From: Leidyana gryllorum EB-2025a
Taxonomy: Eukaryota > Protista > Apicomplexa
Assembly (NCBI GenBank): GCA_048772705.1
Contig: JBLWGC010000167.1
Location: 1-34,626 of the forward strand
Reading direction: 5' to 3'
Length of the DNA: 34,626 bases
Shown: positions 154 through 28,086 of the stretch, in pieces
How positions within the stretch are numbered: the stretch's first letter is position 1
How the letters are laid out: every line of letters begins with the position of its first letter
Position numbers and translations under genes: made by a program
Notes under the pieces: generated by a model
What the model was told of the DNA's origin: nothing
Databases searched by the model: none
The model's input: only the letters and a program-made list of their open reading frames with translations

Positions 154-228
154 GAGGACACATGGTTGTTTTTCACCATTCCAGAAATTCATGCGTGAGT
201 TGGTGTTTGACCCTCCGATCACATCGCA

Positions 229-310
229 CGACAACTGCTGGATTTGAACCAGCGCGGGCCAGGCCCAGTAGATTTCGAGTCTACCCCCTTAACCACTCGG
301 GCAAGTTGCC
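229..310 (-). tRNA. trnS: tRNA-Ser(CGA), intact
   Basis: 82 nt, long variable arm, G73, loop CT-CGA-AA. Confidence 0.93.
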
Positions 311-431
311 AACGGTAGAACTCGGCATGCCGCAGGCAGTGGCTTCACATACGGTTCAGCAGCTTGACTCGGACCGCTCGCGCTGTCCGAACCCGCGGTC
401 TCTCCATTGAAAGTCTTGCGCTCTCCAGACT

Positions 432-1589
432 ACCCCGCGTGTGAATAGGGAGAGAAAGCCGTGTCGCAGGGTGCGAGAGCCGATCGGAGGCGAGTGGTAA
501 TGTCGACGAGCGTAGCGGAGCAGCAGGCGGTAGCGGAGAGGTATCGGACCGGGGAGGGGCACCCTGGCTTGATTCATGGCTAGAGGCAGATGAGTTGCGG
601 AAGTGACGTGGCCCGGCCGGCCGTTGCAGCATTGAACTAGCAGCTGAGTTCAAAAGGGCGGTGGTCCCCGACTGGAGAGATTCAGTCATTGCGGTCTGGA
701 GGAATACAGCGGCAGCTTGTAGTTGGCCTTCGGTGGCAGTATGTGGATCACAATCAATGGTAGTCACCGGAGCAGAGGCGAGGGCGGTCTTCGAGGCGGT
801 GGTAGTCAGCGGAGCAGCGGTGGTGGTAGTCAGCCGAGCCTTAGCATACAATATTTGACACGCAGCCAGCGTCGATTGCAATGGGATGGCGATGGGGGTG
901 GCGTGGATTCCTCCTTTACGTGGGTTGGGCTGAGGGGTTGAAGGAACGTCAAGAAGATTACTTGGGGCTGAAAGCAGCCCAAGAAGGCGTGCTCGAGTGC
1001 TTGCGGGACAACCCAAGCTAATGGCGGAACCGCGATCTGCCTATGGACGTTCTTTCGGCCCTATTCAAAGCGGAGTGTGAGCAACGAGGAGTATGGGACC
1101 CGTTTGGGTACTCGCGAAATGACGATGTCCGCCTTTATAGAGTGAGGGAATGGTGTAGTGCTTTACTTGACTGTATTGAGCTCGGTTTATTCGAGGTGCT
1201 GGAGGTCAACCCCCTTCATAAAGCAGGAAGAGGGAGACTAAGTTTAGTTAAGTTGTAATTCAGCTGGACCATCTGTGTCCCCTTTTTCGTGCTGCATGTC
1301 TCCTCAACCGAGCCGCTAAGGCCCTTAGTCGAGACCCCGTCCAGTCATTAGAACCTTACCAAAGCCCATCTCATCCAAGCTATGAGTCGTACACTAGCTC
1401 TGTAACGCCCGAGCCTTAGCGAAGGCAACACGAGCTCTGCTGTACCGTTTCAGAGGCCGGTCGCCTAGGTACTAGGGGTGTGCTAGGGCTAGAGATCTGT
1501 CCAATATCGTAGCGTTACGATCAGTTCCATGCCGCTACAGCACTCCTACGTGCTCTATCAGCTCCAACGAGTAGCAGAAAGCATATATA
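432..1589. repeat. Left arm of long inverted repeat (non-tRNA)
   Basis: Reverse complement of 2843-3993, with ~6 substitutions and ~5 indels by eye; looser symmetry extends out to 221/4205. Confidence 0.95.
1043..1258 (+). CDS. Hypothetical ORF (MDVLSALFK...), possibly part of a longer interrupted frame
   Basis: ATG start; mirrored at 3012-3374(-); in frame with the MPLQH ORF at 1529. Confidence 0.2.
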   Translation: MDVLSALFKAECEQRGVWDPFGYSRNDDVRLYRVREWCSALLDCIELGLFEVLEVNPLHKAGRGRLSLVKL

Positions 1590-2051
1590 GACTAGATCTA
1601 AACTCGAGATGGTTCACCATTCTACCCAGATTTCAAGGTTTGCGCTGACTAACTATTCCCGATCTTGAACTCCCCTCCGTCTGTTGACCTTTCGCAGGAA
1701 GGGCAAGAGACAGGAGTAGGGCCCGTTTCACTACAAAACCTCGAATCCTTTTTGTCTGCAATGTCCTAGCGTGTTCTCGTGTTCTCTCGGTTGTCTGTCA
1801 CTGAACGAAGTACCATGATGTCGGGGCTCTCTGCTGCTACTACCACTATCATCGATCAGTTGAAGCCAGAGTCGTGGGGCCAGGTACAATTCCGACTCAG
1901 CTTCCCCCCTCTGAACGATGGAATGCAAGATGGGCGAGTTGCTGGTGCGGGTGAAGCCTGTGCGAGCTGCAGTGACCACTCCCTCGGTCGCAACGGTGCA
2001 TACCGTCCGGATCCGTCAGCGGAGCAGCGGCGGTGGCAGTGGCGGTCGTAG

Positions 2052-2903
2052 TCAGCAGATCATTGGCGGCGGCGGTCTTCGAGGCGGTGGCAGTGGCGGT
2101 GGCGCCCCGACGCTTGGCTCCCGGCGGAGCAGAACGCTTGACGGCTTGGATCGCAACGCTTTGTAATTTTTAGTTGCGACACTTACTGAGTGCGGGTCTG
2201 GGACTTCGGGGCCCAAATGTCTCCGTCCCCGATAGTGCGACTGGATCGAAATTTTCATTTTCAGTCCGTGTCGCTCACCTCTCTTCACTCGTGGCCGCTC
2301 ATCGGCTCTCGGCTGCGGCGATGCCAGCACGTCCAAGATCTGCGGCGCGGCGCGGGTCAGTCCGAGCGCGGGGTCCGCTCTTAGAACGTGCTCGAGCAGC
2401 TGCGGCCGATCGCACCACTCGACCTGGTTGAGAAGGCTGAATAAAAACAGCCAGTGCCTTCTGAGGTGGTCAGGAGCCGCTGGTAGGTAGATATAGTAGT
2501 GCGTGTGTAGACAACATACTTGAGTGTGGTGGGGGCCACTTCTTAGTCGGTGGGGAGACGCAGCGAGTAGCAGCAGGTAAGGCACTGACGAGTCCCGCGG
2601 TGTGTGGCAGATACCGATCCATACACCCTCGGTCGGAATTCCACGCACGAAAGACTCCCTCGATTGAGAGGAATCTTTCATGCAGGCCGATTGACGGCGA
2701 TAGCGGAGCCCCACCACTCGATAACGAACTCCATTTATGGTGACATCCTCCGAGGCGTGGAGTGTCGTATCATGGAGTTGCTCTCGAACATGGGGCTGGT
2801 GTATCACACAGGCCAATGCGGATGGCTGTGGGACGTACAAAGTATATATGCTTTCTGCTACTCGTTGGAGCTCATAGAGCACGTAGGAGTGCTGTAGCGG
2901 CAT
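2052..2903 (-). CDS. Hypothetical 283-aa protein
   Basis: Longest ATG ORF in the window; first ~20 codons lie in the repeat arm; no domain recognised. Confidence 0.3.
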   Translation of the reverse strand: MPLQHSYVLYELQRVAESIYTLYVPQPSALACVIHQPHVREQLHDTTLHASEDVTINGVRYRVVGLRYRRQSACMKDSSQSRESFVRGIPTEGVWIGICHTPRDSSVPYLLLLAASPHRLRSGPHHTQVCCLHTHYYIYLPAAPDHLRRHWLFLFSLLNQVEWCDRPQLLEHVLRADPALGLTRAAPQILDVLASPQPRADERPRVKRGERHGLKMKISIQSHYRGRRHLGPEVPDPHSVSVATKNYKALRSKPSSVLLRREPSVGAPPPLPPPRRPPPPMIC

Positions 2904-3993
2904 GGAACTGATCGTAACGCTACGATATTGGACAGATCTCTAGCCCTAGCACACCCTAGTACCTAGGCGACCGGCCTCTGAAACGGTTCAGCAGAGCTCG
3001 TGTTGCCTTCGCTAAGGCTCCGGCGTTACAGAGCTAGTGTACGACTCATAGCTTGGATGAGATGGGCTTTGGTAAGGTTCTAATGACTGGACGGGGTCTC
3101 GACTAAGGGCCTTAGCGGCTCGGTTGAGGAGACATGCAGCACGAAAAAGGGGACACAGATACAACTTAACTAAACTTAGTCTCCCTCTTCCTGCTTTATG
3201 AAGGGGGTTGACCTCCAGCACCTCGAATAAACCGAGCTCAATACAGTCAAGTAGAGCACTACACCATTCCCTCACTCTATAAAGGCGGACATCGTCATTT
3301 CGCGAGTACCCAAACGGGTCCCATACTCCTCGTTGCTCACACTCCGCTTTGAATAGGGCCGAAAGAACGTCCATAGGCAGATCGCGGTTCCGCCATTAGC
3401 TTGGGTTGTCCCGCAAGCACTCGAGCACGCCTTCTTGGGCTGCTTTCAGCCCCAAGTAATCTTCTTGACGTTCCTTCAACCCCTCAGCCCAACCCACGTA
3501 AAGGAGGAATCCACGCCACCCCCATCGCCATCCCCATTGCAATCGACGCTGGCTGCGTGTCAAATATTGTATGCTAAGGCTCGGCTGACTACCACCACCG
3601 CTGCTCCGCTGACTACCACCGCCTCGAAGACCGCCCTCGCCTCTGCTCCGGTGACTACCATTGATTGTGATCCACAAACTGCCACCGAAGGCCAACTACA
3701 AGCTGCCGCTGTATTCCTCCAGACCGCAATGACTGGAATCTCTCCAGTCGGGGGCCACCGCCCTTTTGAACTCAGCTGCTAGTTCAATGCTGCAACGGCC
3801 GGCCGGGGAGGGGCCACGTCACTTCCGCAACTCATCTGCCTCTAGCCATGAATCAAGCCACGGTGCCCCTCCCCGGTCCGATACCTCTCCGCTACCGCCT
3901 GCTGCTCCGCTACGCTCGTCGACATTACCACTCGCCTCCGATCGGCTCTCGCACCCTGCGACACGGCTTTCTCTCCCTATTCACACGCGGGGT
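2843..3993. repeat. Right arm of long inverted repeat
   Basis: Reverse complement of 432-1589. Confidence 0.95.
3012..3374 (-). CDS. Hypothetical 120-aa ORF, mirror of 1043
   Basis: Same first 71 aa; a 14-bp indel changes the C-terminus. Confidence 0.2.
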   Translation of the reverse strand: MDVLSALFKAECEQRGVWDPFGYSRNDDVRLYRVREWCSALLDCIELGLFEVLEVNPLHKAGRGRLSLVKLYLCPLFRAACLLNRAAKALSRDPVQSLEPYQSPSHPSYESYTSSVTPEP

Positions 3994-4045
3994 AGTCGGG
4001 AGAGCGCAAGACTTTCAATGGAGAGACCGCGGGTTCGGGCAGCGC
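3994..4045 (+). pseudogene. 5'-truncated tRNA-Lys relic at the island junction (mirror ~380-431)
   Basis: AGTCGG.AGAGCGCAAGACTTT..CGCGGGTTCG matches the Lys genes. Confidence 0.75.
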
Positions 4046-4115
4046 GACCCGTCCGAGTTAAGCTTGCTGAACCGTATATGAAGCCACTGTCTGCGGCATG
4101 CCGAGTTCGACAGGT

Positions 4116-4197
4116 GGCAACTTGCCCGAGTGGTTAAGGGGGTAGACTAGAAATCTACTGGGCCTGGCCCGCGCTGGTTCAAATCCAGCAGTTGTCG
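4116..4197 (+). tRNA. trnS: tRNA-Ser(AGA), intact
   Basis: Identical to 229-310 except N34. Confidence 0.93.
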
Positions 4198-4261
4198 TGC
4201 GATGTGGTGGAGATGATGCAATTCCCAGCATCAAGAACTCATATGGGTCGGGACAGGGAAT

Positions 4262-4333
4262 GCCTCTTTAGCTTAGGGGCAGAGCATTCGCTTTGTAAGC
4301 GAAAGGTCGCTGGTTCGATTCCGGCAGGAGGCT
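4262..4333 (+). tRNA. trnT: tRNA-Thr(TGT)
   Basis: Cloverleaf, TTCGC-TT-TGT-AA-GCGAA. Confidence 0.88.
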
Positions 4334-4510
4334 TCAGTTATGAGCCCAAACATGGTTGCGATATCCGCCCGCATTTTCGGACGGCGGCTTGCAGACAGCA
4401 CTCGACCATCTCGCCGAAGTGTTGTTGGCTCGCCGTTTCACCCGTTTGCCGTGCGTGTACTCTCAATATGCGAGGACTTCTGGGGTTGGGGGCCGGCGTG
4501 TTTACTAGCG

Positions 4511-4581
4511 TCCGAGATAGTATAGTGGTCAGTATTTCCGCCTGTCACGCGGAAGACCAGGATCGATTCCCGGTCTCGAAG
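4511..4581 (+). pseudogene. tRNA-Asp(GTC) pseudogene
   Basis: T-arm damaged (CCAGGATCGA). Confidence 0.8.
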
Positions 4582-4635
4582 CACATTGGTTTCGCTTGAG
4601 ACTGTCTTTTTTGGTGCGTGCTGAAGGTTGCGAGC

Positions 4636-4708
4636 TACAGCCACCGAGGATCGAATTCGGGACCTTCTGCGTGTAAAGCAGACGTCGTAACCACTAGACC
4701 ATGGCTGC
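4636..4708 (-). tRNA. trnV: tRNA-Val(TAC), one T-stem mismatch
   Basis: Val body with TAC anticodon, G53A. Confidence 0.75.
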
Positions 4709-4772
4709 ATGGATGGTCCCCGCAGCCCAAGAGAAGTGGCGAAGCTTCAGGGAGTAGTGAGGACCAGTTCAA

Positions 4773-4842
4773 GGGTCGGGCCGGGATCGAACCCAAGTCG
4801 GGAAATCCAAAATGTCCAGTGCTAACCACCAAGGACGCAATC
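4773..4842 (-). pseudogene. tRNA-Gln(TTG)-like relic (also 12812-12881 -, 18469-18538 +)
   Basis: Aligns to the Gln-CTG genes, stems broken. Confidence 0.75.
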
Positions 4843-5034
4843 GGTTCAGCCCATCCCAGAACAGTCGGACTGGCGCTCCCTCAACTAGAACACATGCAAC
4901 ACGGGTCTCTCTACAAACCTCTGAAGTATTGTAACTGGATTTTGTATACACCCCCCAGCGTAAAGAGTTGGATTCGAGTCGGCCAAAATCCTCAGTTCAA
5001 TCATTGAAGCAGATGCGCTCTCCCCGAATGCTAC

Positions 5035-5116
5035 CGACAAGGGTGAGATTCGAACTCACGCGGGTAGAACCCAACGGCTTAGCAGGCCGCCGCCTTAACC
5101 ACTCGGCCACCTTGCC
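5035..5116 (-). tRNA. trnS: tRNA-Ser(GCT), intact
   Basis: 82-nt cloverleaf with long variable arm. Confidence 0.95.
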
Positions 5117-5224
5117 GACGACATGTCTTACTCGCTGCCATTTTTTCACAACGGTTTGGGGGAGGTTCTGAGATCGAAGACTTCTTTCACCCCACGAGTA
5201 TCGAGATGACCGAAGCCTCTCCAT

Positions 5225-10413: not shown

Positions 10414-10803
10414 GGAACATCTTGCCGCAATGTTGTTGGCTCGCCGCTTCACACGTTTTCTGTTCGTGAGTCAAAATAGAAAGACTTCTGGGATTGGAGG
10501 CCGGCGTGTACTTCCGCCTGTCACGCGGAAGACCAGGGTTCGTTCCCCGGTCTCGGAGCATAGTTGCTTTCGCTTAGGATTGTTTCGTTTGGTTCTCGCT
10601 GAAAGTTGCGAGCTACAGCCACCGAGGATCAAACTCGGGACTTCCGGACTGTGAAAGGGGCGTGTGTCTCTGGAAACACATATCATGAAGACCTCACAGA
10701 AATGGGACGGGCTGAAGTGGCGCAGTCCGTAAAGCATCTGACCCTCCTGTTGCATCCCATCCTGATTGATGCCCCGCTACCTTTGTAGTTTCACTCGAAG
10801 ATT

Positions 10804-10873
10804 GTCCGAGTCGTCTAGTGGTTGGGACAGCACGTTGTGGCCGTGCAAAGCCACGCTGATTCCTGCCCGGGCA
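10804..10873 (+). pseudogene. tRNA-His(GTG) relic (copies near 20860, 22670, 27470, 32962)
   Basis: GCACG-TT-GTG-GC-CGTGC arm, T-arm destroyed. Confidence 0.75.
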
Positions 10874-10961
10874 GTATGTCTCTGTCGTCTCGAATGGAAA
10901 CTCTTGCCGGGATCAACAACGCTTGATCACCACATACATCCATTTGATGGCCTCGTTAGTC

Positions 10962-11034
10962 GACACTATGGCCCAATGGATATGGAATCGGTCTACGAAA
11001 CCGGGGATTTTGGGTTCGAGTCCCAGTGGCGTCT
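10962..11034 (+). pseudogene. tRNA-Arg(ACG) variant (copies 20701-20773 -, 22828-22900 +, 27309-27381 -)
   Basis: Acceptor and D-stem mismatches, B-box intact. Confidence 0.65.
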
Positions 11035-11418
11035 GGGCGAATGGTCGGGTTCCAGCCTCGCCTGTTGGGTCAACAACTCAGATTTTGTCTTGGCTGTCGG
11101 GGACTTTGTCCGGGATGGGTGGACTGAGAGCCGCATATCTCAGCCGAGCTTCGAGAGACGTGCCGTGTTGAGTCAACAGCTATCAGACGGCAGACGGGCT
11201 GTGTTGGGAATTGAAACCAGCACTTCTTCCACCCGAAACAAGTGCATACCACCAGACCAAACAGCCGCCTATCGGTGGTACAAGCCGCCGATACAGATGC
11301 TCAGGAAGTGAGCACCCCCGGCCGTACGACTTCTTCGGGGCTGGAGGCCGATACACCGCACCCAGACGACAGTCGCAACGGAAGCCGTTTGCACGCTGGA
11401 ACTCAGAAGGAAAGTTCC

Positions 11419-11502
11419 GCACAGATGCCCGAGTGGTCTAAGGGGCCAGACTCAAGTTCTGGTAGGCGCAAGTCTGCATGGGTTCGAATCCCATTCTGTG
11501 CA
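11419..11502 (+). tRNA. trnL: tRNA-Leu(CAA), intact, intronless
   Basis: 84-nt cloverleaf. Confidence 0.95.
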
Positions 11503-11585
11503 ACGGTTCTCATTCCGGGGCGGCATTGGCCATCACTTCGGGTCTACGGCTGTACGAAGTAGCCGTTATATCCCCCTCCCCATTC

Positions 11586-11657
11586 GGCTGTTTGGTCTAG
11601 TGGTATGATCCTTCCTTAGGGTGGAAGGAGTCCTGGGTTCGATTCCTATAAAAGCCC
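11586..11657 (+). pseudogene. tRNA-Pro(AGG), 3' strand degenerate
   Basis: CCTATAAAAGCC versus CCCAGAACAGCC. Confidence 0.75.
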
Positions 11658-11798
11658 TCTTGGTCGTCGGTTGACCCGACGAGACAAGTTGCCCTCAGAA
11701 CCACACACGCACCCCCTTTAGCCCACCTCGGTAGGGCAGTCAGGGCAATTAACATCTCAGGAATCGCATTTCGGCTCCCTCTTCCATGTTGCAGACTG

Positions 11799-11870
11799 AG
11801 CAGTGTAGCTCAGTGGAAGAGTGTGGGGCTCATAACCCAAAGGTCCGTCGATCGAAACGACGCACTGCTA
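11799..11870 (+). tRNA. trnM: Initiator tRNA-Met(CAT)
   Basis: A1:T72, GGG/CCC anticodon stem, GATCGAAA T-loop; one stem mismatch. Confidence 0.85.
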
Positions 11871-11919
11871 AGTGTGCGCAAGAGGGAAACAGTTATAGAA
11901 TTGATTGGGTCGTGAGCGA

Positions 11920-11991
11920 AGCCTTCTGCCGGAATCGAACCGGAGATCTTTCTCTTACTAAGCGAATGCTCTGCCCCTAAGCTAAGAAGGC
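11920..11991 (-). pseudogene. tRNA-Thr(AGT) variant (copies 19743-19814 +, 23772-23843 -)
   Basis: Anticodon- and T-stem mismatches. Confidence 0.7.
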
Positions 11992-12244
11992 AATATCAGC
12001 TGGTAATCACACATCAGTCACTATTGACGGAAGTTACTGGAGCACATTGTTCCACCAGTCAATCCTTCCACTGCTCCACCCAACGGGTGTAACTAAGTTT
12101 AGGGCTTGGTTCGAAACCTGCCAGGACCGGTTTCGGAGGCACACCAAACACTGAGTGCGCTGCTCTCCCAATGGCACTTCTGGTCTGCGACCCTTCAAAG
12201 ATGTAAGTTTGTTTGGGTCCCCCCACGTGCAGCCGTACGTACTT

Positions 12245-12316
12245 TGGACGACTTGGGTATCGATCCAGTACCTCTCGCATGCGAAGCGAGCGCTCTACAA
12301 TCTGAGCTAGCCGCCC
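12245..12316 (-). pseudogene. tRNA-Ala(CGC) degenerate (mirror 19034-19105)
   Basis: D-loop GG lost, 1-nt T-stem deletion. Confidence 0.75.
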
Positions 12317-12376
12317 ATCCACTCTACATGGAAGACCTATTGCATCCAGTGGCTGACCGAGGGCCGATACAACGGC

Positions 12377-12456
12377 TGACAAGAGTGGGATTCGAACCCA
12401 CGCCCTCTCGGACTGCGGCCTTAACACAGCGCCTTGGACCACTCGGCCATCTTGGG
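12377..12456 (-). pseudogene. tRNA-Leu(AAG) with broken acceptor end (mirror 18894-18973)
   Basis: 5' CCCAAGA cannot pair at positions 1-2. Confidence 0.7.
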
Positions 12457-12552
12457 CGGAGTCTTCTTGGCTCGTCACTTCACAAGTTTTCTGTTCTTGG
12501 ATTCTGGATATGGAAAGACTTTTGGGGTTGGAGGCCGTCATGTTTACTAGCG

Positions 12553-12624
12553 TCCGAGATAGTATATTGGTCAGTATTTCCGCCTGTCACGCGGAAGACC
12601 CGGGTTCGATTCCCCGTCTCGGAG
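12553..12624 (+). tRNA. trnD: tRNA-Asp(GTC) variant
   Basis: One T-stem mismatch. Confidence 0.7.
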
Positions 12625-12675
12625 CACAGTTGGTTTCGCTTGAGTCTTTTTTGGTGCTTGCTGAAAGTTGCGAGC

Positions 12676-12747
12676 TACAGCCACGAGGATCGAACTCGGG
12701 ACCTTCTGCGTGTTAAGCAGACGTCGTAACCACTAGACCATGGCTGC
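12676..12747 (-). pseudogene. tRNA-Val(AAC), 1-nt deletion (mirror 18603-18674)
   Basis: T-stem shortened. Confidence 0.7.
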
Positions 12748-13058
12748 ATCGATGGTCCCCGCAGCCCAAAAGAAGTGGCGAAGCTTCAGGGAGTAGTGAG
12801 GACCAGTTCAAGGGTCGGGTTGGGATCGAACCCAGGTCGGGAAATTCAAAGTGTCCAGTGCTAACCACCTAGGACGCAACCGGTTCAGCCCATCCCAGAA
12901 GAGTGGGACTAGCGCTCCCTCAACTGGACACATGCAACACGGGTCTCTCTACTAACCTCTGAAGTATTGTAACTGGCTCTTGTTTACAGCCCCCAGCGTA
13001 AACAGTTGGATTCGAGTCGGACACCTCAATCATTGAAGCAATTGTCCGCGAGTGCTAC

Positions 13059-13140
13059 CGACGACGGTGAGATTCGAACTCACGCGGGTAAAACCCAACG
13101 GCTTGGCAGGCCGCCGCCTTAACCGCTCGGCCACCTTGCC
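13059..13140 (-). pseudogene. tRNA-Ser body with GCC anticodon
   Basis: Ser(GCT) body, T36C, two acceptor mismatches. Confidence 0.8.
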
Positions 13141-13236
13141 AAGAGTGTAACTGATTACACCTTCCCTCGGGCACCCCGTACGAACTGTTGTAGGAAGAGG
13201 AGGGTCTCTATACTAAGCTCTGAACCATTGTAACTG

Positions 13237-13309
13237 GGTCTTGTAGCTCAGTCGGCAGAGCGTGTGGCTGTTAACCACAAAGTCGCAGGTTCGAAGCCTG
13301 CCAGGACCG
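13237..13309 (+). tRNA. trnN: tRNA-Asn(GTT), intact
   Basis: Full cloverleaf. Confidence 0.9.
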
Positions 13310-13604
13310 GGTTCTGCGACAGTGTACACTCTCGACGGCCCTTGTTCTCTTGGACCCTTCCAAGGTCGTAACTTACCCTTAGACCACAAGTGAGCTGCAG
13401 CACCCCGAGAGACTCGGCGTTTTCTGCGTTGAGCTGTCTGCAACATACTCAAAAACAGACTTCTCGGGAATCGAATCGAGCACTCCCACAAGCGAAAGAA
13501 AATCATATCACTAGCACTTCAACTCGACATGCGCGGCAGTGGCTCCCCATACAGCTAGCAAGCTTGCCTCGGTCGAAACTGAACGTCTTCCGAGTGAGAG
13601 GCTA

Positions 13605-13677
13605 TGATGCGGATGGGACTCCAACCCACAACTCCCGGTTCCGAAGACCGATGCCCTATCCATTAGGCCACCGCACC
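13605..13677 (-). pseudogene. tRNA-Arg(TCG), C56G
   Basis: TTGGAGT T-loop. Confidence 0.7.
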
Positions 13678-13777
13678 ATGGATAAGCTTCGGTTATCTGG
13701 ATACTGGTTGGGTGAAAGAGGAGACACCTCGGGGCAGCCCGCTTTCGTCCCACTCAAAAGTCGGATGCGTCCCGAAT

Positions 13778-13850
13778 GCGGTTGTGGCGCAATGGATAGC
13801 GCGTTGCCCTCCTAAGGCAAAGGTTGAGGGTTCGAGTCCCTCCAGCCGTT
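13778..13850 (+). tRNA. trnR: tRNA-Arg(CCT), intact
   Basis: TTGCC-CT-CCT-AA-GGCAA. Confidence 0.93.
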
Positions 13851-14068
13851 TCCTGCGTGCCTTCGTTTGTGCAAAGTGGAGCACAAACTAGTGAAAGTGA
13901 TGGCTTACTAAACGAATGCTCTGCCCCTAAGCCAAGAAGGCAATGTTAGTTGGAGATCACGCATCAGTCCCTATTGACTGAAGTTACTGGAGCACATTGC
14001 ACCGGTTCAATGACTTTCACTGCTCCACCCAACGGTAAATAGGGTGTAACTAAGTTTAGAGCTTCCTT

Positions 14069-14118
14069 GCCGCCCTAGCTCAGTCGGTAGAGCGCAAGAC
14101 TTTTAATCTTGCAGTCGC
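14069..14118 (+). pseudogene. tRNA-Lys(TTT), 3'-truncated
   Basis: Breaks at TCGC into the Arg-ACG upstream flank. Confidence 0.85.
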
Positions 14119-14955: not shown

Positions 14956-15028
14956 CACCGCCCGCGGGGCTCGAACCCGCGACTGCAAGATTAAAAGTCT
15001 TGCGCTCTACCGACTGAGCTAGGGCGGC
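14956..15028 (-). tRNA. trnK: tRNA-Lys(TTT), intact
   Basis: Full cloverleaf. Confidence 0.93.
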
Positions 15029-15241
15029 AAGGAAGCTCTAAACTTAGTTACACCCTATTTACCGTTGGGTGGAGCAGTGAAAGTCATTCAACCGGTGCAA
15101 TGTAACTTCAGTCAATAATAGGGACTGATGCGTGATCTCCAACTAACATTGCCTTCTTAGCTTAGGGGCAGAGCATTCGTTTAGTAAGCGATCACTTTCA
15201 CCAGTTTGTGCTCCACTTTGCACAAACGAAGGCACGCAGGA

Positions 15242-15314
15242 AACGGCTGGAGGGACTCGAACCCTCAACCTTTGCCTTAGGAGGGCAACGCGCTATCCAT
15301 TGCGCCACAACCGC
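15242..15314 (-). tRNA. trnR: tRNA-Arg(CCT), intact
   Basis: Mirror of 13778. Confidence 0.93.
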
Positions 15315-15414
15315 ATTCGGGACGCATCCGACTTTTGAGTGGGACGAAAGCGGGCTGCCCCGAGGTGTCTCCTCTTTCACCCAACCAGTATCCAGATAAC
15401 CGAAGCCTATCCAT

Positions 15415-15487
15415 GGTGCGGTGGCCTAATGGATAGGGCATCGGTCTTCGGAACCGGGAGTTGTGGGTTCGAGTCCCATCCGCATCA
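15415..15487 (+). tRNA. trnR: tRNA-Arg(TCG), intact
   Basis: GTTCGAGT B-box. Confidence 0.88.
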
Positions 15488-15605
15488 TAGCCTCTCACGC
15501 GAAAGACGTTCCGCAAGCTTGCTAGCTGTATGGGGAGCCACCGCGCATGTCGAGTTGGAGTGCTCGTGATATGATTTTCCTTCACATGGAGAGTGCCTCT
15601 GAAAC

Positions 15606-17966: not shown

Positions 17967-18204
17967 AAGGACCTACGGCTGCACGTGGCGGGACCCAAAC
18001 AAACTTACATCTTTGAAGGGTCGCAGACCACAAGTGCCATTGGGAGAGCAGCGCACTCAGTGTTTGGTGGTTAACAGCCGCACGCTCTGCCGACTGAGCT
18101 ACAAGGCCCAGCTACAATGGTTCAGAGGTTAGTAGAGAGACCCTCCTCTTCCTACAACAGTTCGTACGGGGTGCCCGAGGGAAGGTGTAATCAGTTACAC
18201 TCTT

Positions 18205-18286
18205 GGCAAGGTGGCCGAGCGGTTAAGGCGGCGGCCTGCCAAGCCCTTGGGTTTTACCCGCGTGAGTTCGAATCTCACCGTTGTCG
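18205..18286 (+). pseudogene. tRNA-Ser body with GCC anticodon (second copy)
   Basis: One acceptor and one anticodon-stem mismatch. Confidence 0.8.
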
Positions 18287-18725
18287 GCAGCACTCGCGGA
18301 CAGCGCAATTGCTTCAATGATTGAGGTGTCCGACTCGAATCCAACTGTTTACGCTGGGGGCTGTAAACAAGAGCCAGTTACAATACTTCAGAGGTTGGTA
18401 GAGAGACCCGTGTTGCATGTGTCCAGTTGAGGGAGCGCTAGTCCCACTCTTCTGGGATGGGCTGAACCGGTTGCGTCCTAGGTGGTTAGCACTGGACACT
18501 TTGGATTTCCCGACCTGGGTTCGATCCCAACCCGACCCTTGAACTGGTCCTCACTACTCCCTGAAGCTTCGCCACTTCTTTTGGGCTGCGGGAACCATCG
18601 ATGCAGCCATGGTCTAGTGGTTACGACGTCTGCTTAACACGCAGAAGGTCCCAAGTTCGATCCTCGTGGCTGTAGCTCGCAACTTTCAGCAAGCACCAAA
18701 AAAGACTCAAGCGAAACCAACTGTG

Positions 18726-18797
18726 CTCCGAGACCGGGAATCGAACCCGGGTCTTCCGCGTGACAGGCGGAAATACTGACCAATATACTATCTCGGA
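18726..18797 (-). tRNA. trnD: tRNA-Asp(GTC), near-intact
   Basis: Stems pair; G15T. Confidence 0.8.
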
Positions 18798-19220
18798 CGC
18801 TAGTAAACATGACGGCCTCCAACCCCAAAAGTCTTTCCATATCCAGAATCCAAGAACAGAAAACTTGTGAAGTGACGAGCCAAGAAGACTCCGCCCAAGA
18901 TGGCCGAGTGGTCCAAGGCGCTGTGTTAAGGCCGCAGTCCGAGAGGGCGTGGGTTCGAATCCCACTCTTGTCAGCCGTTGTATCGGCTCTCGGTCAGCCA
19001 CTGGATGCAATAGGTCTTCCATGTAGAGTGGATGGGCGGCTAGCTCAGATTGTAGAGCGCTCGCTTCGCATGCGAGAGGTACTGGATCGATACCCAAGTC
19101 GTCCAAAGTACGTACGGCTGCACGTGGGGGGACCCAAACAAACTTCCATCTTTGAAGGGTCGCAGACCAGAAGTGCCATTAGGAGAGCAGCGCACTCAGT
19201 GTTTGGTGTGCCTCCGAAAC

Positions 19221-19293
19221 CGGTCCTGGCAGGTTTCGAACCTGCGACTTTGTGGTTAACAGCCACACGCTCTGCCGACTGAGCTACAAGACC
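19221..19293 (-). tRNA. trnN: tRNA-Asn(GTT), intact
   Basis: Full cloverleaf. Confidence 0.92.
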
Positions 19294-19411
19294 CAGCTGC
19301 AATGTTTCAGAGGTTAGTATGGAGATCCTCCCTTATTCTACTGCAGGATTCTGCAATCATGTCTTGTCAAAAGGGTACGGCTCTCGGCTAAAGCTGCAGC
19401 TGAGGGAGTGG

Positions 19412-19481
19412 TCCACTGTAGTCTAAGTGGCTAGGATATGCGCTCACCCGCACGATCCGGGTTCAAGTCCCGGCAGTGGAA
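19412..19481 (+). pseudogene. tRNA-Glu, 3-nt deletion in the anticodon arm
   Basis: TGCGCTCAC versus TGCGGCTCTCAC. Confidence 0.85.
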
Positions 19482-19541
19482 ATCCAGCTGAGTGCGCTTG
19501 CAGGCAACAGTTCCATTCTTACTTCCAGGGATATAGATCCA

Positions 19542-19614
19542 CACCGCCCGCGGGGCTCGAACCCGCGACTGCAAGATTAAGAGTCTTGCGCTCTACCGAC
19601 TGAGCTAGGGCGGC
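19542..19614 (-). tRNA. trnK: tRNA-Lys(CTT), intact
   Basis: Full cloverleaf. Confidence 0.93.
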
Positions 19615-19863
19615 AAGGAAGCCCTAAACTTAGTTACACCCTATTTGCCGTTGGGTGGAGCAGTGGAAGGATTGACTGGTGGAACAATGTGCTCCAGTAA
19701 CTTCCGTCAATAGTGACTGATGTGTGATTACCAGCTGATATTGCCTTCTTAGCTTAGGGGCAGAGCATTCGCTTAGTAAGAGAAAGATCTCCGGTTCGAT
19801 TCCGGCAGAAGGCTTCGCTCACGACCCAATCAATTCTATAACTGTTTCCCTCTTGCGCACATT

Positions 19864-19935
19864 TAGCAGTGCGTCGTTTCGATCGACGGACCTTTGGGTT
19901 ATGAGCCCAACACTCTTCCACTGAGCTACACTGCT
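19864..19935 (-). tRNA. trnM: Initiator tRNA-Met, intact
   Basis: A1:T72, TTGGG/CCCAA, ATCGAAA. Confidence 0.93.
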
Positions 19936-20076
19936 CAGTCTGCAACATGGAAGAGGGAGCCGAAATGCGATTCCTGAGATGTTAATTGCCCTGACTGCCC
20001 TACCGAAGTGGGCTAAAGGGGGTGCGTGTGTGGTTCTGAGGGCAACTTGTCTCGTCGGGTCAACCGACGACCAAGA

Positions 20077-20148
20077 GGGCTTTTATGGGAATCGAACCCA
20101 GGACTCCTTCCACCCTAAGGAAGGATCATACCACTAGACCAAACAGCC
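20077..20148 (-). pseudogene. tRNA-Pro(AGG) degenerate
   Basis: 3' strand mismatches. Confidence 0.75.
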
Positions 20149-20231
20149 GAATGGGGAGGGGGATATAACGGCTACTTCGTACAGCCGTAGAGCCGAAGTG
20201 ATGGCCAATGCCGCCCCGGAATGAGAACCGT

Positions 20232-20315
20232 TGCACAGAATGGGATTCGAACCCATGCAGACTTGCGCCTACCAGAACTTGAGTCTGGCCCCTTAGACCA
20301 CTCGGGCATCTGTGC
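20232..20315 (-). tRNA. trnL: tRNA-Leu(CAA), intact
   Basis: Mirror of 11419. Confidence 0.95.
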
Positions 20316-21098
20316 GGAACTTTCCTTCTGAGTTCCAGCGTGCAAACGGCTTCCGTTGCGACTGTCGTCTGGGTGCGGTGTATCGGCCTCCAGCCCCGAA
20401 GAAGTCGTACGGCCGGGGGTGCTCACTTCCTAGAGCATCTGTATCGGCGGCTTGTACCACCGATAGGCGGCTGTTTGGTCTAGTGGTATGCACTTGTTTC
20501 GGGTGGAAGAAGTGCTGGTTTCAATTCCCAACACAGCCCGTCTGCCGTCTGATAGCTGTTGACTCAACACGGCACGTCTCTCGAAGCTCGGCTGAGATAT
20601 GCGGCTCTCACTCCACCCATCCCGGACAAAGTCCCCGACAGCCAAGACAAAATCTGAGTTGTTGACCCAACAGGCGAGGCTGGAACCCGACCATTCGCCC
20701 AGACGCCACTGGGACTCGAACCCAAAATCCCCGGTTTCGTAGACCGATTCCATATCCATTGGGCCATAGTGTCGACTAACGAGGCCATCAAATGGATGTA
20801 TGTGGTGATCAAGCGTTGTTGATCCCGGCAAGAGTTTCCATTCGAGACGACAGAGACATACTGCCCGGGCAGGAATCAGCGTGGGTTTGCACGGCCACAA
20901 CGTGCTGTCCCAACCACTAGACGACTCGGACAATCTTCGAGTGAAACTACAAAGGTAGCGGGGCATCAATCAGGATGGGATGCAACAGGAGGGTCAGATG
21001 CTTTACGGACTGCCCTACTTCAGCCCGTCCCATTTCTGTGAGGTCTTCATGATATGTGTTTCCAGAGACACACGCCCCTTTCACAGTCCGGAAGCCCC

Positions 21099-21151
21099 GT
21101 GTAGCCATGGTCACACGCAGAAGTTCCCGAGTTTGATCCTCGGTGGCTGTA
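21099..21151 (+). pseudogene. tRNA-Val with internal deletion (copies near 22450, 27708)
   Basis: D-arm to anticodon deleted. Confidence 0.8.
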
Positions 21152-21360
21152 GCTCGCAACTTTCAGCGAGAACCAAAGGAAACAATCCTAAGCGCAACCA
21201 AGTGTGCTCCGAGACCGGGAAGCGACCCTGGTCTTCTGCGTGATAGGCGGAAATACTAACCGCTATAGAGACCGCGGGTTCGGGCAGCGCGACCGGTCCG
21301 AGTCAAGCTTGCTGAACCGTATGTGAAGCCACTGTCTGCGGGATGCCGAGTTTGACCGTT

Positions 21361-21745: not shown

Positions 21746-22036
21746 GAAGTTGAGCTGAAACGCTGGAAGATGTTAGACCAACATTTCTGACCACAGTGGG
21801 TTGCAGAATCCTGCGGTAGAAAGAGGAGGGTCTCTATACTAACCTCTGAAATATTGTAGCTCCGTCTTGTAGCTCAGTCGGCAGAGCGTGTGGCTGTTAA
21901 CCACAAAGTCGCAAGTTCGAAACCTGCCAAGACCGGTTTCAAAGGCACCCTTAACACTGACTGCGCTGCTCTCGCAATGGCACTTGTGGTCTGCGAGGTT
22001 GGGTTTGGCTCCGGCCACGTGCTGCGGTACCTACTT

Positions 22037-22109
22037 TGGACGACCTGGGTATCGATCCCAGTACCTCTCGCATGCGAAGCGAGCGCTCTACCATTTGAGC
22101 TAGCCGCCC
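22037..22109 (-). tRNA. trnA: tRNA-Ala(CGC), intact
   Basis: Identical to 10201. Confidence 0.93.
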
Positions 22110-22169
22110 AGAGGCACAACATGGAAGAGCTACTGCATTGGGTAGCTGACCGAGTGCCGATACAACGGC

Positions 22170-22249
22170 TGACAAGAGTGGGATTCGAACCCACGCCCTT
22201 TCGGACTGCGGCCTGAACACAGCGCCTTAGACCACTCGGCCATCTTGCC
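22170..22249 (-). tRNA. trnL: tRNA-Leu(CAG), intact
   Basis: Full cloverleaf. Confidence 0.93.
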
Positions 22250-23264
22250 GGAACATCTTGCCGCAATGTTGTTGGCTCGCCGCTTCACACGTTTTCTGTT
22301 CGTGAGTCAAAATAGAAAGACTTCTGGGATTGGAGGCCGGCGTGTATTTCCGCCTGTCACGCGGAAGACCAGGGTTCGTTCCCCGGTCTCGGAGCACAGT
22401 TGATTTCGCTTAGGATTGTTTCGTTTGGTTCTCGCTGAAAGTTGCGAGCTACAGCCACCGAGGATCAAACTCGGGACCTCCTGCGTGTGACCATGGCTAC
22501 ACGGGGCTTCCGGACTGTGAAAGGGGCGTGTGTCTCTGGAAACACATATCATGAAGACCTCACAGAAATGGGACGGGCTGAAGTAGCGCAGTCCGTAAAG
22601 CATCTGACCCTCCTGTTGCATCCCATCCTGATTGATGCCCGGCTACCTTTGTAGTTTCACTCGAAGATTGTCCGAGTCGTCTAGTGGTTGGGACAGCACG
22701 TTGTGGCCGTGCAAACCCACGCTGATTCCTGCCCGGACGGTATGTCTCTGTCGTCTCGAATGGAAACTCTTGCCGGGATCAACAACGCTTGATCACCACA
22801 TACATCCATTTGATGGCCTCGTTAGTCGACACTATGGCCCAATGGATATGGAATCGGTCTACGAAACCGGGGATTTTGGGTTCGAGTCCCAGTGGCGTCT
22901 GGGCGAATGGTCGGGTTCCAGCCTCGCCTGTTGGGTCAACAACTCAGATTTTGTCTTGGCTGTCGGGGACTTTAGCCGCATATCTCAGCCGAGCTTCGAG
23001 AGATGTGCCGTGTTGAGTCAACAGCTATCAGACGGCAGACGGGCTGTGTTGGGAATTGAAACCAGCACTTCTTCCACCCGAAACAAGTGCATACCACTAG
23101 ACCAAACAGCCGCCTATCGGTGGTACAAGCCGCCGATACAGATGCTCTAGGAAGTGAGCACCCCCGGCGGTACGACTTCTTCGGGGCTGGAGGCCGATAC
23201 ACCGCACCCAGACGACAGTCGCAACGGAAGCCGTTTGCACGCTGGAACTCAGAAGGAAAGTTCC

Positions 23265-23348
23265 GCACAGATGCCCGAGTGGTCTAAGGGGCCAGACTCA
23301 AGTTCTGGTAGGCGCAAGTCTGCATGGGTTCGAATCCCATTCTGTGCA
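23265..23348 (+). tRNA. trnL: tRNA-Leu(CAA), intact
   Basis: Identical to 11419. Confidence 0.95.
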
Positions 23349-23431
23349 ACGGTTCTCATTCCGGGGCGGCATTGGCCATCACTTCGGGTCTACGGCTGTA
23401 CGAAGTAGCCGATATATCCCCCTCCCCATTC

Positions 23432-23516
23432 GGCTGTTTGGTCTAGTGGTATGATCCTTCCTTAGGGTGGTTCCTTAGGGTGGAAGGAGTCCTGGGTTCG
23501 ATTCCCATAAAAGCCC
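23432..23516 (+). pseudogene. tRNA-Pro(AGG) with 13-nt anticodon-arm duplication
   Basis: TTCCTTAGGGTGG twice. Confidence 0.88.
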
Positions 23517-23657
23517 TCTTGGTCGTCGGTTGACCCGACGAGACAAGTTGCCCTCAGAACCACACGCGCACCCCCTTTAGCCCACTTCGGTAGGGCAGTC
23601 AGGGCAATCAACATCTCAGGAATCGCATTTCGGCTCCCTCTTCCATGTTGCAGACTG

Positions 23658-23722
23658 AGCAGTGTAGCTCAGTGGAAGAGTGTTGGGCTCAAAGGTCCGT
23701 CGATCGAAACGACGCACTGCTA
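23658..23722 (+). pseudogene. Initiator tRNA-Met with 7-nt anticodon deletion
   Basis: GGGCTCAAAGG versus GGGCTCATAACCCAAAGG. Confidence 0.88.
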
Positions 23723-23971
23723 AGTGTGCGCAAGAGGGAAACAGTTATAGAATTGATGGGGTCGTGAGCGAAGCCTTCTGCCGGAATCGAACCGGAGATC
23801 TTTCTCTTACTAAGCGAATGCTCTGCCCCTAAGCTAAGAAGGCAATATCAGCTGGTAATCACACATCAGTCACTATTGACGGAAGTTACTGGAGCACATT
23901 GTTCCACCAGTCAATCCTTCCACTGCTCCACCCAACGGCAAATAGGGTGTAACTAAGTTTAGGGCTTCCTT

Positions 23972-24044
23972 GCCGCCCTAGCTCAGTCGGTAGAGCGCAA
24001 GACTCTTAATCTTGCAGTCGCGGGTTCGAGCCCCGCGGGCGGTG
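23972..24044 (+). tRNA. trnK: tRNA-Lys(CTT), intact
   Basis: Full cloverleaf. Confidence 0.93.
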
Positions 24045-24104
24045 TGGATCTATATCCCTGGAAGTAAGAATGGAACTGTTGCCTGCAAGCGCACTCAGCT
24101 GGAT

Positions 24105-24177
24105 TTCCACTGCCGGGACTTGAACCCGGATCGTGCGGGTGAGAGCCGCATATCCTAGCCACTTAGACTACAGTGGA
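24105..24177 (-). tRNA. trnE: tRNA-Glu(CTC), intact
   Basis: Full cloverleaf. Confidence 0.93.
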
Positions 24178-24295
24178 CCACTCCCTCAGCTGCAGCTTTA
24201 GCCGAGAGCCGTACCCTTTTGACAAGACATGATTGCAGAATCCTGCAGTAGAATAAGGGAGGATCTCTATACTAACCTCTGAAACATTGCAGCTG

Positions 24296-24368
24296 GGTCT
24301 TGTAGCTCAGTCGGCAGAGCGTGTGGCTGTTAACCACAAAGTCGCAGGTTCGAAACCTGCCAGGACCG
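24296..24368 (+). tRNA. trnN: tRNA-Asn(GTT), intact
   Basis: Full cloverleaf. Confidence 0.92.
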
Positions 24369-24483
24369 GTTTCGGAGGCACACCAAACACTGAGTGCGCT
24401 GCTCTCCCAATGGCACTTCTGGTCTGCGACCCTTCAAAGATGTAAGTTTGTTTGGGTCCCCCCACGTGCAGCCGTACGTACTT

Positions 24484-24556
24484 TGGACGACCTGGGTGTC
24501 GATCCCAGTACCTCTCGCATGCGAAGCGAGCGCTCTACAATCTGAGCTAGCCGCCC
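24484..24556 (-). pseudogene. tRNA-Ala(CGC), D-loop GG lost
   Basis: GATTGTA D-loop. Confidence 0.65.
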
Positions 24557-25974: not shown

Positions 25975-26205
25975 AGTGAGTGGATCTTTGATAAAGAGTT
26001 GCCCTGGAGCCAAGGAAGCCCCAACATTCTGCTTCCAATACGAAAGGAACTTGTTACCAAGTCCAAGCTTCCTTGCCGCTAGCTCCGTCGGGAGCGCAAG
26101 ACTTTCAATGGGGAGACCGCGGGTTCGGGCAGCGCGAGCGGTCCGAGTCAAGCTTGCTGAACCGTATATGAAGCCACTGTCTGCGGCATGCCGAGTTCGA
26201 CAGGT

Positions 26206-26287
26206 GGCAACTTGCCCGAGTGGTTAAGAGGGTAGACTAGAAATCTACTGGGCCTGGCCCGCGCTGGTTCAAATCCAGCAGTTGTCG
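26206..26287 (+). tRNA. trnS: tRNA-Ser(AGA), one D-stem change
   Basis: Paralog of 4116. Confidence 0.8.
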
Positions 26288-26351
26288 TGCGATGTGGTGG
26301 AAATGATGCAATTCCCCGCATCAAGAACTCATATGGGTCGGGACAGGGAAT

Positions 26352-26423
26352 GCCTCCTTAGCTTAGGGGCAGAGCATTCGCTTAGTAAGCGAAAGGTCGC
26401 CGGTTCGATTCCGGCAGAAGGCT
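26352..26423 (+). tRNA. trnT: tRNA-Thr(AGT), chimeric acceptor
   Basis: 5' flank of the TGT locus, 3' flank of the AGT loci; C5:A68. Confidence 0.75.
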
Positions 26424-26472
26424 TTGGTCACGACCCAATCCATTCTATAGCTGTTTCCCTCCTGGGCACACT

Positions 26473-26544
26473 TAGCAGTGCGTCGTTTCGATCGACGGAC
26501 CTTTGGGTTATGAGCCCAACACTCTTCCACTGAGCTACACTGCT
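26473..26544 (-). tRNA. trnM: Initiator tRNA-Met, intact
   Basis: As 19864. Confidence 0.93.
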
Positions 26545-26839
26545 TAGTCTGCAAAATGTAAGAGGTAGCCGAAATGCGACTCTCGAGATGTTAGTTGCCC
26601 TGACTGCCCTACCGAAGTGGGCTAAAGGGGGTGCGTGTGTGGCTCTGAGGGCAACTTGTCTCGTCGGGTCAACCGACGACCAAGAGGGCTTTTATGGGAA
26701 TCGAACCCAGGACTCCTTCCACCCTAAGGAGTATCATACCACTAGATCAAACAGCCGAATGGGGGGGGGATATAACGGCTACTCACGTACAGCCGTAGAC
26801 CCGAAGTGATGGCCAATGCCGCCCCGCAATGAGAACCGT

Positions 26840-28027: not shown

Positions 28028-28086
28028 GCGTTGTATCGGCACTCGGTCAGCTACCCAATGCAGTAGCTCTTCCATGTTGTGCCTCT

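Follow-up and report, generated by a model that had tools for sequence, protein, structure and literature searches.

A single-copy inverted repeat in the tRNA-gene array of Leidyana gryllorum as the probable scar of a fold-back duplication

How does a 3.6-kb stretch free of tRNA genes come to lie inside a huge, scrambled tRNA-gene array, with two long and almost identical arms in inverted orientation that join the remains of a tRNA-Lys gene at the same place? The question is raised by positions 432-3993 of the window, by which we mean the whole 34,626-nt stretch of Leidyana gryllorum EB-2025a that was analysed (contig JBLWGC010000167.1 of assembly GCA_048772705.1, here C167). Only 431 nt separate the island from the contig end. 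The megabase tRNA fields of the organism are almost wholly multicopy, so individual rearrangements in them cannot be ordered; here a single-copy passenger, outgroup fragments on two other contigs (C162 and C71) and paralog-diagnostic flanks provide a readable example. We consider the locus to be, probably, the scar of a single fold-back (snap-back) inverted segmental duplication that was then resolved by recombination inside a repeated cassette of a tRNA-Lys relic and a tRNA-Ser gene. A jumping-element origin is disfavoured, a local fold-back copying accident being the most likely source of the island.

Arms, centre, flanks and joints

The features of the locus are as follows, in window positions.

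228-311, minus strand: tRNA-Ser(cga), outer left homology (ARAGORN; Rfam tRNA, 56.7 bits)
312-431, minus strand: left flank, spacer and the 3' portion of a tRNA-Lys(UUU) relic that belongs to the Ser(cga)-Gly cassette type
387-431, minus strand: the 45 nt of relic nearest to the joint, the same in both flanks except at the private base 427
432-1589, plus strand: left arm, probable source copy of the inverted duplication; non-tRNA, single-copy except for its mirror
1227-1329, plus strand: patch that resembles, at about 82%, part of a different tRNA-free island (C71:24690-24792)
1517-1673, plus strand: 158-nt patch matching the tRNA-Tyr/tRNA-Leu spacer of contig C162 at 95% identity
1583-1589, no strand: ATATATA tract with which the arm ends on its inner side, mirrored by TATATAT at 2843-2849; a candidate for the microhomology that primed the fold-back
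1590-2842, plus strand: single-copy centre of 1253 nt, probable fold-back spacer or loop
2842-2843, no strand: putative novel joint of centre and inverted copy, from the continuity of C162 over 1589|1590
2843-3993, minus strand: right arm, probable inverted copy, with 14-bp and 1-bp deletions and a 6-bp insertion as derived changes against the left arm
3994-4114, plus strand: right flank, 3' part of the Lys relic and spacer, Ser(aga)-Thr type beyond the first 45 nt
4115-4198, plus strand: tRNA-Ser(aga), outer right homology (ARAGORN, Rfam)

The arms are 1158 and 1151 nt long and are 99.4% identical at aligned bases. An earlier note on this DNA had recognised their near-identity and put the difference at about six substitutions; the actual count is seven substitutions (564, 665, 741, 1163, 1410, 1443 and 1559) and five indels, the largest of which span 14 bp (1257-1270) and 6 bp (611), while the remaining three, at 682, 882 and 1475, are of a single bp. 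The 14 bp at 1257-1270 are present in the left arm and in the independent C71 homologue and have been lost from the right arm. TRF reports only trivial arrays of 17-24 nt on the island, and the arms are complex sequence without tandem subrepeats. The only repeated part of the centre is an 84-nt spacer patch, and an older, diverged copy of a GC-rich motif of the arms lies in the centre at 2015-2094.

The flanks tell a different story from the arms: between 312-431 and 3994-4114 there are 10 substitutions and one indel, much as the earlier note had estimated (about 10 in 120), and the contrast between 7 substitutions in 1158 nt of arm and 10 in 120 nt of flank is strong (Fisher p = 4e-7). The inverted homology itself goes on beyond 431/3994: it continues through both tRNA-Ser genes, whose sole difference is the anticodon base 277, and ends abruptly at 220/4206. 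That the flanks represent different Lys-relic paralogs is borne out by separate intact cassette types: cassettes at C141:35141, C161:13367 and C81:29048 (Lys relic, Ser(cga), Gly) match the left flank at 99% identity, and those at window positions 26087-26350 and C188:17941 (Lys relic, Ser(aga), Thr) match the right flank at 97%. At three private positions the right flank departs from the cassette type nearest to it, and the assembly contains no exact donor for it; one has to assume that conversion took place later or that the donor was not assembled. The genome contains about 800 candidate copies of the Lys-relic/Ser cassette. The cassette is truncated elsewhere at many other positions, so breakage within it is commonplace.

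The outer joint is identical in both flanks and lies inside the Lys D-loop/A-box, with the 3' half of the relic kept on both sides, as the earlier note saw. The note was right about a shared joint and too precise about its base (...GGGGT|AGTC), as the position is resolvable only to about 7 nt. The motif GGTAGTC spans the joint and is island-specific, all eight window copies sitting in the arms. The G before AGAGCGCAAGACTTTCAATGG (AGAGCGC) is private to the two flanks, with T in 46 other copies, and the sole two non-T variants after the relic 5' half are point variants. This G may be island sequence, as part of the GGTAGTC motif; it would then show a common joint and not, on its own, co-duplication of the relic. 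The joint-proximal 45 nt were nevertheless probably co-duplicated with the arm: they differ only at the private base, whereas the following 75 nt hold nine substitutions and one indel, a clustering inside the flank that is only suggestive (Fisher p = 0.09 with the private base, 0.014 without). A switch of paralog type after 45 shared nt points either to resolution in a dispersed repeat or to later gene conversion.

The inner boundaries can be polarised with the outgroup. The Tyr/Leu spacer of C162 is collinear with 1517-1673 and shows no break at the boundary of left arm and centre, 1589|1590, while the right arm departs from the C162 homology exactly at TATATAT. Because 1589|1590 is unbroken in the homologue, it is the ancestral boundary and 2842|2843 the derived joint. 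The ATATATA at 1583-1589 is also found in C162 and so is ancestral on the left; with the arms ending in ATATATA and TATATAT at the inner joints, this tract is a candidate microhomology at the one junction available.

Searches for copies, enzymes and hidden genes

One explanation offered by the earlier note was the double insertion of an element that targets tRNA-Lys genes. The island terminus, which begins CCCCGCGTGTGAATAGGG, is found at one locus in the assembly: its 28 nt have no other match in 15.5 Mb with up to three mismatches allowed, and an exact 24-mer of it is absent from the metagenome contigs. A DNA search with both arms and the centre likewise finds no second locus in the 15.5-Mb assembly, the only matches being the patches of 158 nt and about 100 nt. 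The joint base of the Lys relic is no hot spot of breakage, all 46 other close copies being intact there, and no 5' relic half of the subfamily was found that ends at the joint or adjoins the island. Double insertion is thus not supported, a terminus confined to this locus being an outcome that the earlier note had named as speaking against its reading. The same note's judgement that this is no simple insertion with a target-site duplication agrees with what surrounds the island, namely the same relic 3' half in inverted orientation, with no such duplication and no adjoining 5' half.

For coding capacity, 18 ORFs of at least 50 aa on both strands of 345-4137 were compared with Pfam at a cut-off of E<=0.01. 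None contains a family at this cut-off, the single weak match (0.052) falling short of it, and the absence of transposase, reverse transcriptase (RT) and integrase is in this way upheld. An ORF of 120 aa in the arm has no paralogue in the genome and no homologue in a large protein collection, and likewise no relatives were found for the neighbouring ORF of C71. A long frame at 368-1648, whose stops are TAG and TAA only, was rejected as coding, since it has 14 stops in 427 codons (three of them supplied by GGTAGTC) and crosses the non-coding relic. No hidden tRNA relics or structured RNAs came to light in the island with Rfam (E<=1), with ARAGORN at its lenient setting or in a short-word BLAST comparison with the other parts of the array. 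A scan for bacterial-type promoters and terminators gave nothing beyond shuffles, a type of scan that has no bearing on a eukaryote. The island is a passenger, and no function is implied.

A course of events and its rivals

The starting point would have been a 2.4-kb non-tRNA patch (432-2842), a pre-existing mosaic including the Tyr/Leu spacer fragment, that was already attached, at a single joint, to the D-loop of a tRNA-Lys relic belonging to the Ser(cga)-Gly type. We infer a break near 2842-2849, upon which the 3' end would have folded back on its own strand and paired with the ATATATA tract at 1583-1589. Synthesis would then have copied the arm outward, over the joint between island and relic and about 45 nt into the relic, and resolution may have come about by homologous annealing, template switch or crossover with a Ser(aga)-Thr type copy of the Lys-relic/Ser cassette. 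Fold-back copying with resolution in a cassette would yield all of the following together: near-identical arms, a 1.25-kb single-copy spacer, the same joint twice and flanks from different paralogs. The identical docking base in particular is simpler to understand as one joint that was duplicated. The earlier note came close to this with its alternative of a foldback or joined array pieces; the homogenisation of the arms that it invoked is not needed, because an arm identity of about 99.4% matches that of other recent inverted duplications in the contig. The net product of the event is one extra tRNA-Ser cassette, and the locus by itself is an ordinary rearrangement scar and no new element.

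The same duplication could also be read without a switch of partner: the block of Ser, relic and arm would simply have been duplicated as a whole in inverted orientation, after which one or both flanks were converted from array cassettes, so that the flank difference would stem from later patching and not from the way in which the duplication was resolved. The array cassettes are visibly mosaic, the flanks have some 800 candidate donors while the arms have solely each other as partner, and the right flank fits no single donor, all of which would suit conversion. The tract would, however, have to end 45 nt from the homology edge and, on its outer side, to run on beyond tRNA-Ser and into the Thr or Gly cassettes; the abrupt end of homology at 220/4206 resembles a switch of neighbour more than a patch, and a one-ended fringe is also found in other palindromes of the contig. 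We regard this sequence of events as unlikely. An assembly artefact near the contig end, due to a long read that was chimeric or of foldback type or to a false join across repeats, has in its favour the position of the island 431 nt from the end of C167, the extreme repetitiveness of the array and the three 1-bp indels between the arms, which are possible read errors. Artefacts of foldback reads are perfect palindromes with no spacer and with identical flanks. The island, by contrast, has a unique centre of 1253 nt, flanks of different paralog types and arms that differ by seven substitutions and by indels of 6 and 14 bp, one of which is corroborated by an independent homologue; similar palindromes also lie deep inside the contig. 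Such an artefact is very unlikely.

Highly improbable, too, is a mobile element with long terminal inverted repeats (foldback-type) or with tRNA-Lys as its target, which would have entered two Lys relics at the same base, or of which two copies would have recombined, with an inversion as the result that left two 3' halves round one copy. Long, nearly identical arms and the same joint within the A-box of two different paralogs would fit such an element, and mobile elements of compact genomes are known to target tRNA genes (PMC5006619, PMC6101501). Against it stand the single-copy state of terminus, arms and centre in 15.5 Mb, the lack of a reciprocal product or orphan 5' half, the count of 0 in 46 for other close relic copies broken at the joint base, the missing target-site duplication, the 18 ORFs with no enzyme domain and the 120-aa ORF with no relatives, as well as arms that have no FB-type tandem subrepeats and an inner arm end that cuts ordinary array spacer. 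Known tRNA-targeting retroelements, moreover, land beside and not within tRNA genes. There is a very slim chance that the island is the last surviving non-autonomous element of foldback type, or the product of a site-specific nuclease or recombinase that recognises the tRNA-Lys D-loop/A-box. If such a recognising activity existed, it would be one driver of the scrambling of the parasite's tRNA fields, and the missing other copies would reflect loss or incomplete assembly.

Known systems and the other palindromes of the contig

Fold-back duplications have been described in other organisms. Human constitutional inverted-duplication rearrangements have single-copy spacers of 766-70,466 bp, and inverted microhomology of 2-8 bp accompanies fold-back duplications (PMC3907307); in foldback inversions of S. 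cerevisiae the main stabilising route is reported to be a homology-mediated secondary rearrangement in a dispersed repeat (PMC7467729). The island resembles these cases (PMC3907307, PMC7467729) in its two inverted copies round an unduplicated spacer of 1253 nt, in the short self-complementary sequence at the joint of spacer and inversion, a candidate microhomology, and in having one ancestral boundary and one novel one. In contrast to the human and yeast fold-backs, this is a small, interstitial event that has become fixed in the tRNA array of a protist, and the resolving repeat would be a tRNA pseudogene/tRNA-Ser cassette in place of Alu, LINE or Ty; neither a terminal deletion nor a dicentric stage is visible at the island, and the mechanism is deduced from one junction.

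The retrotransposons that target tRNA genes, such as TRE5/TRE3 and DGLT-A of Dictyostelium and Ty1/Ty3 of yeast, encode RT and integrase or endonuclease, are multicopy, produce target-site duplications and insert tens of bp upstream or downstream of the tRNA gene (PMC5006619, PMC6101501, PMC5911963). With them the island shares foreign-looking DNA at a Pol III gene, in the A-box region; unlike them it has neither RT, integrase or endonuclease nor a target-site duplication, is single-copy and has its joint inside the D-loop.

The island shares its long inverted arms (1158/1151 nt) with the Drosophila FB transposons and other long-TIR elements. In these elements long inverted arms surround a central segment and are often non-coding; FB elements, which are multicopy and generate target-site duplications, have arms composed of tandem subrepeats. 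The island differs in its arms of unique sequence, its single copy and its lack of a target-site duplication, in being flanked by the same half-target in inverted orientation, and in a homology that extends into the host cassettes to 220/4206.

Closest at hand is the rest of the tRNA mega-array itself. The locus shows the reshuffling proposed for this array, by recombination through tRNA genes and relics and with nested palindromes; unlike it, the island has a single-copy, non-tRNA passenger that provides landmarks, and these polarise one rearrangement into a source arm, a copied arm, a novel joint and a switch interval. At least five further kilobase-scale inverted duplications are present in the contig, with arms of 0.6-2.6 kb, spacers of about 0.9-4.8 kb and overall identities of 94-99%. 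The five have near-identical cores, and in four of them one end carries a sharply more divergent fringe, as at the island. A simple ungapped walk across their inner junctions was broken by indels and nesting and is uninformative on microhomology. The many other kilobase palindromes of the contig are most likely due to the same kind of accident. The signature seen here combines a core that is nearly identical between the copies, 1-5 kb of spacer, a short AT palindrome where the novel joint lies, and a divergent fringe that marks the switch of the copy into another cassette. If this signature is general for the nested palindromes of the array, it would explain the shuffling and amplification of the fields and point to fold-back duplication with homology-driven resolution.

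The inverted repeat and its flanks

The assembly searched comprises 15.5 Mb in 237 contigs, one of which, in its entirety, is the window (C167). tRNA arrays are seen on many of these contigs; the 34.6-kb window alone holds 125 tRNA genes on both strands (ARAGORN), eukaryotic in type in that no encoded CCA is visible in the window sequence. A cassette made up of a tRNA-Lys relic and a tRNA-Ser has about 770-800 candidate copies in the genome. Two cassettes of this kind face each other across a tRNA-free island, and the inverted homology, which is wider than the earlier note had placed it, spans 220 to 4206.

Features of the island locus
228-311, minus strand, tRNA-Ser(cga), within the inverted homology
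312-431, minus strand, left flank, tRNA-Lys(UUU) relic with spacer
432-1589, left arm
1590-2842, centre
2843-3993, right arm, inverted
3994-4114, plus strand, right flank, tRNA-Lys(UUU) relic with spacer
4115-4198, plus strand, tRNA-Ser(aga), within the inverted homology

The anticodon is the sole difference between the two tRNA-Ser genes. Each flank is a decayed tRNA-Lys(UUU) gene; the 5' half of the relic still aligns at about 90% with the window's working Lys genes, and in the island-bearing copies relic homology starts in the D-loop. In gapped alignments the arms (432-1589 against 3993-2843) differ by 7 substitutions and 5 indels (6 bp, 14 bp and three of 1 bp), and the flanks (312-431 against 4114-3994) by 10 substitutions and 1 indel, a significant contrast (Fisher p = 4e-7) which bears out the divergence figures of the earlier note. 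Its claim that the flanks carry the diagnostics of different paralogs also proved real, as two cassette types are seen when they are aligned with some 60 cassettes taken from across the contigs. The left flank (GGACAG, AAGC-TGCTG, CTGCCTGCGGC, TTCTACC, Ser-cga, then Gly) is 99% identical to intact cassettes on three other contigs (C141:35141, C161:13367 and C81:29048), nearer left-type relatives than the one that the earlier note had named. The right flank (GTATATG, GACAGGTGG, Ser-aga, then Thr) is closest, at 97%, to cassettes at window position 26087 and at C188:17941.

Tests of a mobile element

The earlier note had proposed a tRNA-Lys-targeted element, inserted twice or joining two array ends, and every test run speaks against a mobile element. 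No copy of an arm, the centre or the 28-nt terminus (up to 3 mismatches) was found beyond this locus in the whole assembly, and a terminus confined to this locus is the outcome that the note itself had named as refuting its idea; a 24-nt terminus likewise had no match among metagenome contigs. As that note had said, no transposase, reverse transcriptase or integrase is recognised, the 18 island ORFs of at least 50 aa matching no Pfam family at E<=0.01, and a simple insertion with target-site duplication is absent, both flanks being the same half-target, inverted. The arms contain no tandem subrepeats, and Rfam, lenient ARAGORN and short-word BLAST detected neither RNA genes nor tRNA relics within the island. 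A single ORF looks protein-like; it is 120 aa long in the right arm, is shortened to 71 aa in the left, and lacks both paralogues and homologues. Frame 1 of 368-1648 runs for 427 codons with 14 TAG/TAA stops and a single TGA at its end; a variant genetic code was rejected here, since the frame crosses the Lys relic, itself non-coding, and the GGTAGTC motif supplies three of its stops; it is read as non-coding.

The duplicated joint and its polarity

Both flanks share GTC[G/T]GGAGAGCGC, a state unique in the genome. Going outward from the joint, they agree over 45 nt but for one private base at 427, and the next 75 nt hold 9 substitutions and 1 indel. Over these 45 nt the right flank matches the left one and not its own nearest cassette type, which has GG--GAGCGC and ATGGGGAG. 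Such a pattern is what would be left if a single island/relic joint had been copied with the arm and the copy had then passed into another cassette. Statistically the switch point has modest support (p = 0.09 counting the private base, 0.014 without it). Of the cassettes with the exact 21-mer adjoining the joint, 46 are uninterrupted and show the usual T in front of it, and G occurs only in the two island copies; only two 5'-half copies have a non-T after GTCGG, both point variants rather than breakpoints. Since cassettes elsewhere are truncated at many other positions, the joint base is no break hot spot. All eight GGTAGTC copies in the window lie in the arms (428-434, 759-765, 801-807, 825-831 and their mirrors in the right arm), and because the copy at 428-434 spans the joint, the shared G may be part of the island rather than of the relic. 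Whichever of the two owns this base, left and right have the joint in common, and it may have formed by microhomology between GGTAGTC and the D-arm (GTCGGTAGAGC).

Two short outgroup fragments on other contigs give the palindrome a direction. Window 1517-1673 is 95% identical to a tRNA-Tyr/tRNA-Leu spacer on contig C162, and this homology crosses the left arm/centre boundary (1589/1590) without interruption, while the right arm matches the spacer up to TATATAT only and then departs; the left boundary is therefore ancestral and 2842/2843 the joint created by duplication. The second patch, window 1227-1329, resembles at 82% part of another tRNA-free island, on contig C71; the 14 bp kept in the left arm and in this copy are absent from the right arm, which thus carries a derived deletion. 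The arms end inwards in a self-complementary tract (ATATATA, 1583-1589; TATATAT, 2843-2849), at which a resected 3' end could pair with its own strand.

The best reading of the locus, and a fairly probable one, is a fold-back inverted duplication. We infer a break right of the centre, after which intrastrand pairing at the AT tract would have allowed 1.2 kb to be copied outward over the pre-existing island/relic joint, with resolution by homologous recombination or template switching inside the highly repeated Lys-relic/Ser cassette. Documented cases show a matching pattern: in human inverted duplications the single-copy spacers measure 766-70,466 bp and the joint has 2-8 bp of inverted microhomology (PMC3907307), and in yeast, foldback inversions start from hairpins in single-stranded DNA and owe their stability mainly to secondary rearrangements mediated by homology (PMC7467729). 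A closely related scenario, duplication of the entire block followed by conversion of the flanks, seems rather unlikely. An assembly artefact is more improbable still, since the centre is unique, the 14-bp difference is corroborated and the flanks are not alike.

Other palindromes and islands of the array

Self-comparison of the window yields at least five further kb-scale inverted duplications, built of ordinary tRNA cassettes.

Further inverted duplications (left copy; right copy)
10636-13281; 18063-21099
19034-21256; 22344-24556
22035-23844; 26351-28161
13480-14118; 14979-15596
30690-31387; 33904-34603

Spacers of about 0.9-4.8 kb separate the copies, which are 94-99% identical overall. Segment-by-segment profiles show near-identical cores, with 0-2 substitutions per 60 nt and indels of several bases, the longest named being 384 bp. 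Divergence climbs sharply at an end in four of the five, as it does at the island locus; the fifth (30690-31387) diverges more along its whole length. The arm/flank contrast is therefore common among palindromes of this contig, and the element-specific homogenisation of arms suggested earlier is unneeded. The earlier observation is accurate and the feature real, and its interpretation was partly right: the locus adds one more case to a known class of rearrangement and is not a new element; it is of some value as a polarised example of reshuffling in an unusual tRNA array.

The island consists of 2.4 kb of apparently non-coding DNA, single-copy except for one array spacer fragment and the patch shared with C71. 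The C71 island (C71:22830-25134, that is, 2830-5134 of the stretch L039) contains, besides this patch (about 100 nt), a unique 78-aa ORF with no Pfam match and the decayed remains of a eukaryotic LSU rRNA, a fragment about 1.4 kb long with internal deletions (Rfam RF02543, 330 bits). tRNA fields therefore occasionally hold foreign or captured patches, and we take the window island as another such passenger.

The array also has odd members. On C162, the tRNA at 1198-1271 of the stretch L003 has, according to ARAGORN, the anticodon TTA, which would read UAA; it is probably a mutated array copy, because none of the 125 window tRNAs has such an anticodon. Within the window ARAGORN reports four others.

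Odd array members
13058-13141, 'Gly(gcc)' of Ser-like length (84-85 nt)
18204-18288, 'Gly(gcc)' of Ser-like length (84-85 nt)
32577-32647, Asp-like, with anticodon ATC
19412-19481, anticodon loop unreadable

The contig starts, at 5-66, with two tandem copies of a 31-nt unit (93% matches, TRF).
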